Part shown: positions 16,301 to 21,721 of the stretch, piece after piece
Layout: each line of letters starts with the position of its first letter
Numbering within the stretch: position 1 is the stretch's first letter
NCBI GenBank assembly: GCA_002269645.1
Contig: NIVC01005063.1
Span: forward strand, 1 to 27,427
Length of the DNA: 27,427 nt
Origin: Macrostomum lignano
Lineage: Eukaryota
Direction: 5' to 3'
Program-made: the position numbers and the translations under genes
The notes under the pieces: model-generated
The model's database searches: none
Told to the model about the DNA's origin: nothing
Seen by the model: only the letters and a program-made list of their open reading frames with translations

Positions 16301-19300
16301 CTGAGAATGAAAGGAAAAGAGATGTAGGGAGATTCAAGACTGAGAATGAAAGGAAAAGAGATGTAGGGAGATTCAAGACTGAGAATGAAGGGATCAGATA
16401 GATGTGGGGAGATTCAAGACTGAGACTGAAGGGAGAGATACAGGGAGATTCAATCATAATAATCTAGCAAATTATTGCTATTTTTTCATTGTTTATCTGT
16501 AGTTTTTAATGTAGTTTAGAAGATTCAAAGAAAAACTCGGTTCAAATCATGGAACTACAAAAAATCCTCCACAGAATCAGCTGACAAATCGAGGAAGATT
16601 TCTAAGAAAGGCGGCCGTCAGGCGCCGGCGCGAGCGCCAGCCGATTGGACTCAATTTTCGAGCCAGTGGAGGGCGAGTCTGAGACGGACCTGGCTTTGCC
16701 TGGAGCCGCCATGCTGCTGCTTCCGGCGCCTCTGTCGCAGCAGCAGTCGAACGACAGCGAGCTGCAGCAGCAGCAGCAGATCAGCGACAAGACATCCTTC
16801 GACAAACCTCCGACACCTCGAGTTCGAGTCATGCCAGTAGGATCAGATCGAGTTCGGGTAGCCTGGGAGTTTGACTCGATGTCGGCGAATCTTTGGCGTC
16901 ATCTGCGGTCGACAGTTAGCGTGGCGGGGCGTCGGTTCCGGCAAGAAGGAGGCGGCGGCGGCGGGGAGGCGGCAGGCAGCGGCGGAGAGGCGGAGAGTCA
17001 GGGAGCTGCTCGGAGAAGCTGGAGCTGCGGCCCAGCGGCACGGGAACTGGTCTGCGGCGGCTTGGAGACTGGCTGCGACTATATGTGAGGGTGGGGTGGA
17101 GCTGGGGGGTTGGGGTGGCTGTGCAAGGGGATGGTGGGGTGGCTGTACAAGGGGAGGATGGGGTGGCTGTGCAAGGACAGGGTAGGGTGGCTGTGCAAGG
17201 GGAGGGTGGGGTGGCTGTACAAGGGGAGGATGAATTGGCTGTGCAAGGGGAGGGTGAGATGGCTGTGCAAGGGGAGGGTGAGGTGGCTGTGCAAGGGAAG
17301 GGTGGGGTGGCTGTGCAAGGAGAGGGTAGGGTGGCTGTGCAAGGGGAGGGTGGGTGGCTGTTCAAGGGGAGGGTGAGGTGGCTGTGCAAGGGAAGGGTGG
17401 GGTGGCTGTGCAAGGAGAGGGTAGGGTGGCTGTGCAAGGGGAGGGTGGGTGGCTGTTCAAGGGGAGGGTGAGGTGGCTGTGCAAGGGAAGGGTGGGGTGG
17501 CTGTGCAATGGTGAGAGTTGGGTATAAAGTAGTAGGTATATATTCCAAAGTAAAATTCCAATCATTCCATTAATTCTCCATCATTTTCCAGCATCCACGT
17601 GATCTCAGCCTTCGCAGCCGTCGAAAACTCCAGCTCGCTGGGCGAGCGCATCAGCCGCTCGGCGCCTGTAGCCTTCAAAGCGGGTTCCACTGCCAGTGTT
17701 CCGTTGACTTCAGCTGGCAACGATGTCGATGCGTCCCAGAAAGCATCATCCTCCAAGCAGAAGGTCCAGATGTTGCAGAAGGAGCAGCAGCAGCCGCCGC
17801 CGATTCCGCAGCCCCGACTGTTCGCGGTGTCCTCCGGTCCCAATCGGGTCGCCGTCCGCTGGGCATTCGACGAATCGGCGGCGACAAGCGGCGTGGAGCT
17901 GGCCGGCTACCAGCTGCTGATCAACGGCGCCCGTCGTGGCGGCCTCCTACCGTCGCAGACCTCGCAGACAACGTTGGAGCCGCTGCGACCGGGTCGGACG
18001 ATTCGAGTGGCCGTCCAGGCCGCGGCCTTCGTCAGCTCGAGCTCCGGTGAGGACGGCCGCGTTGGCGAGAACGAGGATGACGATTTCCGGCTGGGCCCGG
18101 CGTCGGCGACTCTCCGGGTCGCCTGTCCGCGGAGGCCGTCGGCGCCGGAGCCATCCGTGTCGCCCGCCCCGGCGTCGGCTGGCGTCGCGGGCGGCGCGGC
18201 CGCCACCGTGTCCTGGGCGGGCGCCCCAGACGATGCCGGAGTCAGCCGATATCGGTGGGTTCCGTTTGCTTTTTGGGAGCGTTGATTTTTTTGAAGAGTA
18301 CGTTCGATCGTCACTGGCTTCCGAAAATTACAGTAGCTAATTGTTTGATTGTGAAGAAGTTGGCCTTCGTCAGTCAGTCATCCAGACGCTGGTCTCAGTT
18401 GTGCACAGGATGCTTCTTTTATAGCGACACTTCTCGGGCTATGTGTGAAATTTTACGATTAAAATCTCTATTACTCTACTTCTCTGAGTAGCCTAAATTA
18501 AATCTGTCACAAATGGATTTTAAAAAAACTAAATAGGCACCTTAGCGTTCTAATTCTAAGCTAAGTGCGTCTTCCTGAATGAACGGATACTAATTAATGT
18601 CTTTAACTAACCCCAAGTCCTCTCCTTTACCAATTCAACAGCGTCTACGTCGACGGTCAGTGGCACGGCGATTTGAAGGCGTCGCCAAGTCGTGGAAACT
18701 ATTTTTATTACCTGTCGGATCTGCAGCCAGGTCTGGCTTGCGAAGTTCAGGTCAAGGCTATCGCTGGTAGCGACGAGGTAAGAGAGATTTAACTGTCGAC
18801 TTCCATATATTGGAAACGATCAATAAATCAACGATTTTGCACAGGTGGATCCGCAATCTGACACAGTGACTTGCCTCTGCGAGAGCGAGCTCAGTCAGCC
18901 GCCTCTGCGCGTCACGGGCGCTTCAGTCACGCAGAGTCCCGAGCTGAAACTGGAGGCCCTGGACTCTGACGGTCTGACCGTGGCCTGGGATCCGCTGACA
19001 CCGGAGTCCGGCATCTCCGTGAGTCTTGCGTTGCATTTTTAGCTTAACACCCCTCCTGAATTCTGATTGGCTGAGGGATATGACGTCATTCCTCTCTATC
19101 CCTATATGAACATCCCACCCCACGCTGGCTTGATCATTCCTGATATCTGATTGGCTGACGTACACGACGTCACGTCGGATCCCAGCTCTACTTCTCATTG
19201 GCTCTGGATGCTCGATCTAAATTTAATTTAAATTCGACTTGAATATTCACATTTTCATAAATATGAAATTTTCACAGTTACAAATAAAGCTTTCATTGAG

Positions 19301-21721: not shown

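Follow-up and report, generated by a model that had tools for sequence, protein, structure and literature searches.

A single-exon scramblase-family gene nested on the same strand within an intron of an FN3-repeat gene of Macrostomum lignano

The window analysed here comprises all 27,427 nucleotides of contig NIVC01005063.1 (Macrostomum lignano assembly Mlig_3_7) and very probably contains a conventional same-strand nested gene, in which the autonomous gene Mlig012151 lies inside an intron of a large FN3-repeat host. A complete single-exon scramblase-family CDS on the same strand, located within an intron that splits an FN3 domain, had been proposed in the original prediction; the ORF and the intron were found where they had been claimed, and the family assignment agrees with a Pfam match. 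The arrangement is an ordinary nested gene and is already present in public annotation. The following structural features were identified:

10630–10649, + strand: site of a 1-nt indel in a G-run, with a premature host stop at 10647–10649; the host gene annotated on this contig ends here, at 869 aa
18643–18777, + strand: host exon with the second half of FN3 repeat 4 (...AIAGSDE) and a GTAAGA donor at 18778; matched by tblastn of host model P0014 with 100% identity, splice sites and frame checked
18845–19018, + strand: host exon A, which encodes the first half of FN3 repeat 5 and has a GTGAGT donor; both of its ends are in phase 0, and P0014 terminates exactly here
19019–21004, + strand: host intron, 1,986 bp, phase 0, GT..AG, holding the nested gene; donor and acceptor identical in 4/4 copies
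19520–20278, + strand: nested single-exon CDS of 252 aa, Mlig012151, examined by Pfam, GenBank copies, pN/pS, AF2, and Foldseek
21005–21299, + strand: host exon B, which encodes the second half of FN3 repeat 5 (GYQILRDG...) and a Ser/Ala-rich linker, GTGAGT donor at 21300, phase 1
23472–23545, + strand: host terminal coding exon, (N)LNAFVDLFAKICDRLLTSVLTGQ followed by the stop, TTTCAG acceptor, phase 1; in frame with exon B, and the CDS ends annotated on L002 and L003 map here

Position, annotation, and conservation of the two genes

The scramblase ORF extends from the ATG at 19520 to the TAG at 20276–20278 and encodes 252 aa with no internal stops. GenBank copies of the protein are available as PAA51288.1, PAA51751.1, and PAA90407.1, and Mlig012151 (g1–g3) is a gene model of its own, apart from the host, in the RNA-seq-based GenBank annotation. 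The copies of the ORF differ by 0.9% substitutions and by one 3-nt indel only, with pN/pS of ~0.05 (6 synonymous vs 1 nonsynonymous differences; P = 0.0008). A pseudogene was rejected on this ratio and on the in-frame nature of the indel. The separate RNA-seq-based model and the low pN/pS indicate that the inner gene is independent, expressed, and functional. The identifier Mlig012151 was not found in the M. lignano full texts or paper supplements that were searched, so that no expression class could be assigned.

The host exons displayed pN/pS of 0.21 (P ~1e-4). The two differences that separate exon A from the other copies are both synonymous, and so is the single difference between exon B and the copy on contig L003. 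Both the nested gene and the host gene are under purifying selection. The host intron showed 1.8–3.5% substitutions among the copies and numerous indels of lengths not divisible by three. Exon B has zero divergence from contigs L001 and L002. This was rejected as a sign of constraint, since the adjoining downstream intron is equally invariant and the identity is therefore uninformative.

The arrangement occurs in four copies in the assembly, including those on three paralogous contigs, and is older than the duplications that gave rise to these copies. The GenBank annotation was built from RNA-seq data and assembled transcripts, with transcriptional units cut at SL and poly(A) peaks. On two of the three paralogous contigs (L002 and L003; accessions NIVC01000110.1 and NIVC01003366.1), this transcript-based annotation contains a host CDS of 1,920 aa that encloses the scramblase gene, with host CDS exons flanking it on both sides. 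The CDS ends of L002 (14069) and L003 (14183) correspond to window position 23545; the host stop codon accordingly occupies 23543–23545, 3.2 kb past the scramblase gene. On NIVC01005063.1 and L001, the annotation has no host gene that spans it. In the case of NIVC01005063.1, the missing host gene is explained by the 1-nt homopolymer indel in the G-run, which truncates the host ORF. The UniProt model A0A1I8FLB3 is chimeric.

The host intron is bounded by GT at 19019–19020 (GTGAGT) and AG at 21003–21004 (GACAG/G). The end of the downstream exon had been put at ~21301 and needs correction to 21299, given the phase-1 GTGAGT donor that follows. All four relevant host introns (4/4) possess GT[AG]AG donors and CAG acceptors, and the chain 18643–18777, 18845–19018, 21005–21299, 23472–23545 stays in frame to the annotated stop. 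The host length estimated with exons A and B is ~1,928 aa, 8 aa off the annotated 1,920 aa; the estimate without them is ~1,772 aa.

Pfam search revealed no fn3 match in either flanking exon alone. The spliced A+B peptide gave an fn3 match at aa 34–100, which spans the junction 58/59 and scored 16.4 bits (E = 0.011), below the 25-bit cut-off. Two whole host models exceeded this cut-off: P0014 with 42.8 bits and P0013 with 27.3 bits. Alignment of the five FN3 repeats of the host contained five invariant columns and supports the homology of repeat 5, in which exon A provides the invariant V and W, and exon B the invariant Y, G, and A. The proposed continuity of the FN3 domain across the intron is supported by a sub-threshold match over the junction and by a spliced repeat with all five invariant columns. 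A search with the 947-aa concatenated host query retrieved only the older ML2/UniProt models P0013–P0016 and the chimera P0004, none of which crosses the A/B junction. The 157-aa spliced A+B peptide matched no protein in a word-indexed search; the same search also missed P0004, so that this null result is weak evidence against the junction. We infer the exact position of the A/B junction in the mRNA from the canonical splice sites, their phase, the fn3 match over the junction, the repeat alignment, and the length estimate.

The scramblase-family protein

Profile search assigned the nested protein to the Pfam family Scramblase (PF03803) with 37.6 bits (cut-off 25.4; E = 1.9e-9). The match covers aa 133–250, which correspond to profile positions 94–220 of 221, that is, only the C-terminal 60% of the profile; with MAFFT, the N-terminal half could be aligned as well. 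In the AF2 model, an acidic N-terminus (residues 1–60) is predicted to be disordered, and residues 61–249 (pLDDT 80–94) are predicted to form a 12-strand barrel with a C-terminal helix at 231–243. The best Foldseek matches to this model were 1ZXU and TULP1 (probability 1.00; TM 0.64 normalised to 1ZXU), and a sequence search of the PDB with the same protein returned no match. The nested protein is thus predicted to retain the barrel fold.

The motifs named in the original prediction, among them the acidic stretch and GCCG, are all present, and its description of the protein as divergent was correct, in that neither the Cys-rich motif nor the Ca2+ loop of DADxF type has been retained. The loop was defined by the EF-hand-like 'DADxFxxxFPxD' type. 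At this position of alignment A1, the relatives have T[DN]AD[STN]F ('TDADxF') and the nested protein has DEKGPVY. The Cys-rich palmitoylation cluster of CCxCC type is gone: a 16-column gap occurs where the paralogues display CCSCCSCC, and only 'LTCDQH' is left. The GCCG of the nested protein aligns with the conserved upstream CC..CG of the family, not with the palmitoylation cluster. At the predicted C-terminal helix, considered as a possible membrane anchor, K234 and D245 are invariant and about 10 hydrophobic residues are left, with 'IDFMFFE' replaced by 'FDRKLFD', so that the helix is interrupted by D-R-K. With neither the palmitoylation cluster nor the canonical Ca2+ loop retained, the nested protein is unlikely to work like PLSCR1, as a scramblase that is anchored by palmitoyl groups and triggered by Ca2+.

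With the PLSCR family, including the M. lignano paralogues Mlig026026, Mlig031540, and Mlig009655, the nested protein shares the Pfam match, alignment over the whole domain, and the predicted 12-strand barrel with a C-terminal helix; the three paralogues also resemble the nested gene in having a single-exon CDS. The identity to these canonical paralogues in alignment A1 is, however, only 24–31%, and the nested protein differs from them in the 16-residue deletion, in DEKGPVY instead of TDADxF, in the D-R-K within the helix, and in the acidic N-terminus of 60 aa. The Tubby C-terminal domain and LOR/DUF567 (PDB 1ZXU, 2FIM, 3C5N), with a barrel round a central helix, come structurally closest to the predicted model; sequence identity to these structures is just 11–14%, and Pfam assigns the nested protein to the scramblase branch rather than to Tubby or LOR. 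No orthologue outside M. lignano was detected among 1.84 billion representatives. The nested protein is a lineage-restricted paralogue and a divergent member of the scramblase/LOR/Tubby-like barrel superfamily. A predicted scramblase fold that lacks the palmitoylation and Ca2+ motifs offers a modest lead on fold diversification.

Signals in the intron and alternative readings

The intron contains several candidate signals for expression of the nested gene:

19054–19203, + strand: promoter-like cluster with CCAAT boxes, CRE, and a 35-nt repeat; putative promoter of the nested gene
19377–19382, + strand: candidate trans-splice site CTGCAG, the sole [T/C]TNCAG match between the host donor and the ATG
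19513–19514, + strand: AG earlier proposed as SL acceptor; reads TAG in the window and CAG in the other three copies
20490–20495, + strand: candidate poly(A) signal ATTAAA, 212 nt past the stop codon; invariant in 4/4 copies
20922–20927, + strand: alternative candidate poly(A) signal AATAAA, 644 nt past the stop and 77 nt ahead of the host acceptor; unchanged in 4/4 copies

The 35-nt direct repeat of the promoter-like cluster is located at 19054–19088 and 19138–19172. Three inverted CCAAT boxes of the form CTSATTGGCT occur at 19063, 19147, and 19194, and a palindromic CRE, TGACGTCA, occupies 19081–19088 and is accompanied by further TGACGT/ACGTCA half-sites. The motif CTSATTGGCT was observed four times in the window vs 0.13 expected, with three of the four occurrences in this cluster. 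Each of the four copies has retained the core motifs; the region as a whole is no better conserved than the remaining intron (~7 differences in 160 nt). CTSATTGGCT is absent from the paralogue loci L005–L008, which therefore give no sign of a shared duplicated promoter.

The SL trans-splice acceptor motif of M. lignano is [T/C]TNCAG, and its SL is 35 nt long, CGGTCTCTTACTGCGAAGACTCAATTTATTGCATG (PMC8629364). The CTGCAG at 19377–19382, identified by motif match only, is invariant in 4/4 copies. Frame reasoning indicates that the ATG of an SL joined at either 19383 or 19515 would be out of frame with the ORF. Besides the two candidate poly(A) signals, an AATAAT is present at 20370 and is not conserved among the copies. 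Scans of the whole window for tRNA genes and Rfam families found nothing, which leaves the tRNA-like or SINE-like appearance of 20780–20850 unsupported. The 3' half of the intron displayed no similarity to a small sample of other DNA with which it was compared and thus gives no evidence for a repeat family.

In the reading that we favour, the M. lignano host gene is large (~1,920 aa), has been little characterised, and contains several degenerate FN3 repeats; its pre-mRNA would be cis-spliced from 19018 to 21005, which takes out the phase-0 intron of 1,986 bp. Most likely, the nested gene would be transcribed from a TATA-less promoter of its own, with CCAAT and CRE elements in the initial 200 nt of the intron, and its mRNA would receive its poly(A) tail inside the intron, with ATTAAA 20490 or AATAAA 20922 as the signal. 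This mRNA may or may not additionally receive the spliced leader. We infer promoter use, the poly(A) site, and the function of the nested protein from sequence features.

Alternatively, the nested mRNA could be cut from the host pre-mRNA in an operon-like manner, by SL trans-splicing at CTGCAG 19377–19382 or the YAG at 19514 combined with intronic polyadenylation, so that one transcript would give rise to either the host or the nested mRNA. SL trans-splicing affects approximately 30–39% of M. lignano genes, and multi-gene precursors make up ~7% of the assembled transcripts (PMC8629364, PMC5730564). These frequencies speak for such a route, as do the location of both genes on the same strand, the perfect [T/C]TNCAG that lies 137 nt upstream of the ATG in all copies, and the fact that annotation cuts at SL/poly(A) peaks would likewise yield a separate gene identifier. 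Yet the strongly over-represented CCAAT/CRE cluster just upstream is what an independent promoter would have, and the out-of-frame SL ATG would open an upstream ORF that ends before the real start (19383) or overlaps it (19515); on balance, we regard this route as unlikely, though by no means negligible. A decidedly unlikely scheme is that of one transcription unit giving rise to either FN3 mRNA or scramblase mRNA, with SL trans-splicing and intronic polyadenylation competing with cis-splicing, and with the protein being a soluble, Ca2+-independent derivative of the scramblase fold that has a new function. Two tandem genes, with the FN3 gene ending at or before exon A, exon B and the terminal exon belonging to another transcript, and the scramblase being intergenic, would agree with the annotated stop of the upstream gene at 10649 and the absence of any gene called across the scramblase on this contig, with the termination of P0014 at the end of exon A, and with the failure of the spliced A+B peptide to match a protein. 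Given that the 1,920-aa CDS of two paralogous contigs extends across the scramblase, that the 1-nt indel accounts for the truncation here, that only the joined exons make up a complete FN3 repeat, that the reading frame continues to the annotated stop, and that the length estimate fits (~1,928 vs 1,920 aa), this arrangement is very improbable. A host–scramblase fusion isoform, in which exon A is spliced to the in-frame AG 19486 or AG 19540 and the scramblase serves as an alternative 3'-terminal exon, is hardly credible. The AGs at 19485–19486 and 19539–19540 would indeed join the phase-0 exon A in frame with the ORF, and pieces of the host and of the scramblase are combined in P0004, an ab initio UniProt model. 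This model is, however, a visible artefact of frameshifted fragments, the in-frame acceptors are poor in context, the transcript-based annotation has a separate 252-aa gene starting from the ATG at 19520, and a fusion of this kind would halve an FN3 domain.

The lack of introns in the nested gene had also been taken to suggest retroposition. As a retrocopy, the gene would derive from an intron-containing scramblase whose processed mRNA had integrated into the host intron, which is consistent with its single-exon CDS; its strong divergence from the paralogues means that old hallmarks could have decayed. A comparison with the three closest M. lignano paralogue groups does not bear this suggestion out. 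Their CDS spans of 690, 687, and 687 nt match protein lengths of 229, 228, and 228 aa, so that Mlig026026, Mlig031540, and Mlig009655 are all single-exon genes and no intron-containing parent was found among these groups that could provide a contrast. Single-exon genes are the rule among M. lignano scramblases, and this structure cannot, therefore, be read as a sign of retroposition. No direct repeats of at least 12 nt that could represent target-site duplications bracket the nested gene, and no A-tract as a poly(A) remnant follows its 3' UTR. The nested gene also has an upstream promoter-like cluster, which a processed copy would not carry along, and its origin as a retrocopy is quite improbable.

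Relation to known nested genes and operons

Nested gene sets are available for human and Drosophila (Yu et al., 2005; Assis et al., 2008; both cited in PMC3192792). According to PMC3192792, ~37% of human nested genes are located on the same strand as the host and ~41% are single-exon genes. The same-strand position of the scramblase gene had been presented as unusual. The position itself stands; its rarity was overstated, in view of the human proportion of same-strand genes. Same-strand single-exon nested genes are common in animals. As in the metazoan nested genes, a complete single-exon gene is contained here in one host intron and has its own regulatory signals, which are candidates in the present case. 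The fact that the host intron splits a protein domain sets Mlig012151 apart from these gene sets and is in itself unremarkable. Another difference is that Mlig012151 belongs to a flatworm with SL trans-splicing, which makes host-derived expression of the nested gene an extra formal possibility.

The locus matters little beyond annotation, where it adds a clear example of same-strand nesting from a flatworm model. The arrangement resembles the SL operons of M. lignano (PMC8629364, PMC5730564) in the presence of same-strand genes in one potential primary transcript and, by motif match, in the [T/C]TNCAG acceptor upstream of the downstream ORF. Operon genes are, however, arranged in tandem and are not nested in introns, and the inner gene examined here is preceded by a promoter-like cluster. 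If SL processing from the host pre-mRNA proved true, the locus would be convenient and accessible to transgenesis for studies of competition between cis- and trans-splicing.

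Probable splicing of the host gene over the scramblase ORF

The window, which is the full 27,427-bp contig NIVC01005063.1 of assembly Mlig_3_7 (GCA_002269645.1), carries a scramblase-family gene (Mlig012151) within an intron of a large FN3-repeat gene. The two genes are arranged as follows:

19019-21004, + strand: host intron, from GTGAGT to GACAG, 1,986 bp, phase 0
19520-20278, + strand: scramblase ORF, from ATG to TAG, 252 aa
18643-18777, 18845-19018, 21005-21299, 23472-23545, + strand: reconstructed 3' end of the host gene, a 678-nt open chain

The exons on either side of the intron (A, 18845-19018; B, 21005-21299) matched no Pfam family when searched alone. 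The spliced A+B peptide gave an fn3 match straddling the junction, with a score of only 16.4 bits (E = 0.011). Stronger evidence for FN3 continuity over the intron comes from the alignment of five FN3-like host repeats. It contains five invariant columns (V, W, Y, G, and A); in repeat 5, V and W are contributed by exon A, and Y, G, and A by exon B. The junction '...SGIS/GYQILRDG' restores the 'xGYxLxxNG' motif of the other host repeats. The host is probably spliced over the scramblase ORF. Since the ORF, the splice sites, the Pfam Scramblase match, and the FN3 repeat alignment agree, together with the fn3 match across the junction, the original prediction of a scramblase ORF inside an FN3-splitting intron is confirmed. 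The gene layout it proposed also holds, except for the end of the downstream exon, which lies at 21299 (GTGAGT donor, phase 1). An intron also interrupts repeat 4 (18256-18642) in the corresponding region of the domain ('...GVSRYR/VYVDGQW...'), at a position offset by three residues from the intron of repeat 5.

Rather than being predicted ab initio, the Mlig_3_7 annotation was built from StringTie/TACO RNA-seq assemblies and a mapped de novo transcriptome, with gene boundaries set by spliced-leader (SL) and poly(A) reads and ORFs called by TransDecoder. On two paralogous contigs, L002 (NIVC01003366.1) and L003 (NIVC01000110.1), it includes a + strand gene of 1,920 residues that matches fn3 faintly and encloses a separately called scramblase gene. 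The 1,920-residue CDS ends with '...AFVDLFAKICDRLLTSVLTGQ*', and its TAG maps to window positions 23543-23545, 3.2 kb past the scramblase stop. The reconstructed host chain stops exactly at this codon; the donors of its introns all fit the species consensus GT[G/A]AG, and the acceptors are all CAG. Host length was estimated from the 867 residues up to 'AEDAG' in the contig's annotated protein, the UniProt model P0013, and the later exons. Counting exons A and B, the estimate is ~1,928 aa, versus 1,920 aa annotated; leaving them out lowers it to ~1,772 aa. The older UniProt models P0013, P0014, and P0015 cover the host from ~880 to 19018, and P0014 breaks off right at the final codons of exon A. 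Comparison of the host exons in the window with those in L003 revealed 16 synonymous and 10 nonsynonymous changes (pN/pS = 0.21, P ~1e-4); the three that fall in exons A and B all leave the amino acid unchanged.

Copies of the locus

The free-living flatworm Macrostomum lignano uses SL trans-splicing, and part of its genome is duplicated; the locus is therefore present in at least four copies, namely the window, L001 (NIVC01003469.1), L002, and L003. GenBank matches to the 252-aa ORF were BOX15_Mlig012151 g1-g3 of M. lignano (PAA51288.1, PAA51751.1, and PAA90407.1). The nested arrangement is common to all four copies, so nesting is older than the duplications that made them.

The window ORF differs from the other three copies by 7 nt, corresponding to six synonymous changes and K31T (pS = 0.035, pN = 0.0017, pN/pS = 0.05; P = 0.0008 under neutrality). 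Its synonymous rate is comparable to the intron substitution rate of 1.8-3.5%. Among the copies, the ORF shows a single indel, a GAG triplet that keeps the frame and encodes one Glu in the acidic run; numerous indels that are not multiples of three occur in the intron sequence on either side. This pattern indicates that the nested gene is real and under constraint. The GAG codon in question (EEEEEE run, 19637-19639) is absent in L003 (Mlig012151 g1, 251 aa), representing an in-frame homeologue polymorphism.

The annotation of the window contig contains an 869-aa gene ending at 10649 and no host gene over the scramblase. A G-run at ~10638 (site 10630-10649) reads GGGG in the window and L001, GGGGG in L002, and GGTGG in L003 (at ~1000, ~10, and ~410 in L001, L002, and L003, respectively). 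The 1-nt difference shifts the host frame into a stop, hence the 869-aa annotation. Possible causes are a homopolymer error in PacBio sequencing and a real lesion in one homeologue; L001 has further such indels close to the G-run.

Several minor features were also observed. Positions 1-17781 of L001 share 99.05% overall identity with window 9641-27426. Despite this, its variants within 18600-21500 are exactly those of L002/L003, including all seven ORF differences, a pattern pointing either to homeologous gene conversion or to an assembly consensus that is a mosaic. Microsatellite-like tandem arrays of the 12-mer class (8248-9312, 10815-12186, 14821-15440, 24175-24744, and 25321-26052) account for most copy-to-copy length differences and give rise to long but spurious ORFs in several reading frames, both inside and outside host introns, with APQALIL runs among the products. 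Two C12-C14 tracts followed by TCTA/TA (20674-20689 and 20830-20845, 156 nt apart) are located in the intron's 3' half, which is rich in indels; variation in length from copy to copy is concentrated at this site. Searches for tRNAs, Rfam families, and repeat copies were negative. An imperfect (88%) AT-rich inverted repeat of 17 nt (19220-19236 and 20481-20497) brackets the ORF and proximal 3' UTR and could be due to chance or a trace of a mobile-element-like insertion.

Both genes were in GenBank beforehand, and the annotation of two paralogous contigs already implies the nesting; no mention of Mlig012151 was found in the papers searched. Next to well-described animal nested genes, this locus is a straightforward example: in human, ~63% of nested genes are antisense to the host, and thus ~37% are same-strand, and ~41% are single-exon (PMC3192792).

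Protein family and origin of the nested gene

The Pfam Scramblase profile (221 positions; cut-off 25.4 bits) matched the ORF product along positions 94-220, at 37.6 bits. An exhaustive HMMER search of 1.84 billion representatives revealed only 10 proteins at E <= 1e-3, with no orthologue-like protein from other species among them. These were the protein itself, the chimeric UniProt model P0004, one likely spurious repeat protein, and canonical scramblases sharing 27-33% identity in the matched segments, among which M. lignano paralogues ranked first.

The alignment with related scramblases spans the entire scramblase domain, beginning at 'YLDRFAF' and closing with the C-terminal helix. The nested protein has a 12-residue deletion close to the start, and a 16-residue deletion takes out the Cys-rich cluster (CCSCCSCC in paralogues), known in PLSCR1 as the palmitoylation motif. 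The Ca2+-loop signature 'TDADxF' is replaced by 'DEKGPVY', the C-terminal helix contains charged D-R-K, and the 60-residue acidic N-terminus is predicted to be disordered. The 'GCCG' motif, listed in the original prediction among marks of divergence, is present and lines up with an upstream 'CC..CG' position that the family conserves. AlphaFold2, run with the alignment, gave pLDDT 80-94 over residues 61-249, with twelve strands followed by a helix (231-243). With a probability of 1.00, the model was closest in the PDB to At5g01750 of the LOR family (1ZXU) and to the Tubby domain of TULP1. The protein is thus predicted to keep the fold, while the motifs linked to membrane anchoring and Ca2+ triggering are missing. 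By profile and predicted fold it is a divergent scramblase-family member, for which PLSCR1-like activity is not claimed.

The three closest paralogue groups, Mlig026026, Mlig031540, and Mlig009655, have CDS spans of 690 nt (229 aa), 687 nt (228 aa), and 687 nt (228 aa). All three are thus single-exon, and a single-exon CDS is the norm for the family in this genome. Intronlessness is therefore uninformative on the origin of the nested copy. Neither direct repeats of 12 nt or more bracketing the gene nor an A-tract after its 3' UTR were found. The proposal that lack of introns suggests retroposition is thus unsupported; an ancient event of this kind may have taken place, but nothing points to it.

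Expression of the nested gene

The intron contains the following candidate signals:

19054 and 19138, + strand: 35-nt direct repeat, within the first 200 nt of the intron
19081: perfect CRE-like site TGACGTCA
19194: third CCAAT box
19377-19382, + strand: candidate trans-splice acceptor CTGCAG, invariant, the only [T/C]TNCAG upstream of the ATG
20490, + strand: candidate poly(A) signal ATTAAA, conserved
20922, + strand: candidate poly(A) signal AATAAA, conserved, only 77 nt upstream of the host acceptor

Each copy of the 35-nt repeat includes CRE-like sites and an inverted CCAAT box in the NF-Y-like extended context CTGATTGGCTGA. The core CCAAT/CRE motifs are intact in 4/4 copies of the locus. 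Against an expectation of 0.13, the window contains four occurrences of the 10-mer CTSATTGGCT, three of these in the intron cluster. The fourth copy of the CTGATTGGCT motif (13312-13321), inside the host coding exon 13189-13470, is probably coincidental.

We favour a nested mRNA made from its own intronic promoter; the first 200 nt of the intron would act as a TATA-less promoter, with transcription starting at ~19220-19350. Release of the nested mRNA from host pre-mRNA by SL trans-splicing, the sole reading with some novelty, is improbable without being negligible. The invariant CTGCAG could serve it; the AG at 19514, proposed originally as the acceptor, is TAG in the window and CAG in the other copies. 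The M. lignano SL ends in ATG (PMC8629364), and joining it at 19383 or 19515 would place this ATG out of frame with the ORF, which is compatible with trans-splicing. A host-scramblase fusion isoform is unlikely, because acceptors of good quality would break the reading frame, which is kept only at the AGs 19486 and 19540, both in weak contexts. The sole database 'fusion' protein, P0004, is a patchwork of frameshifted fragments.

P0004 (A0A1I8FLB3, 683 aa, 'Fibronectin type-III domain-containing protein') maps to ~16600-21100 and combines host exons with frameshifted pieces of the nested ORF. We rejected it as a true fusion and regard it as an ab initio artefact, which would mislead homology searches.
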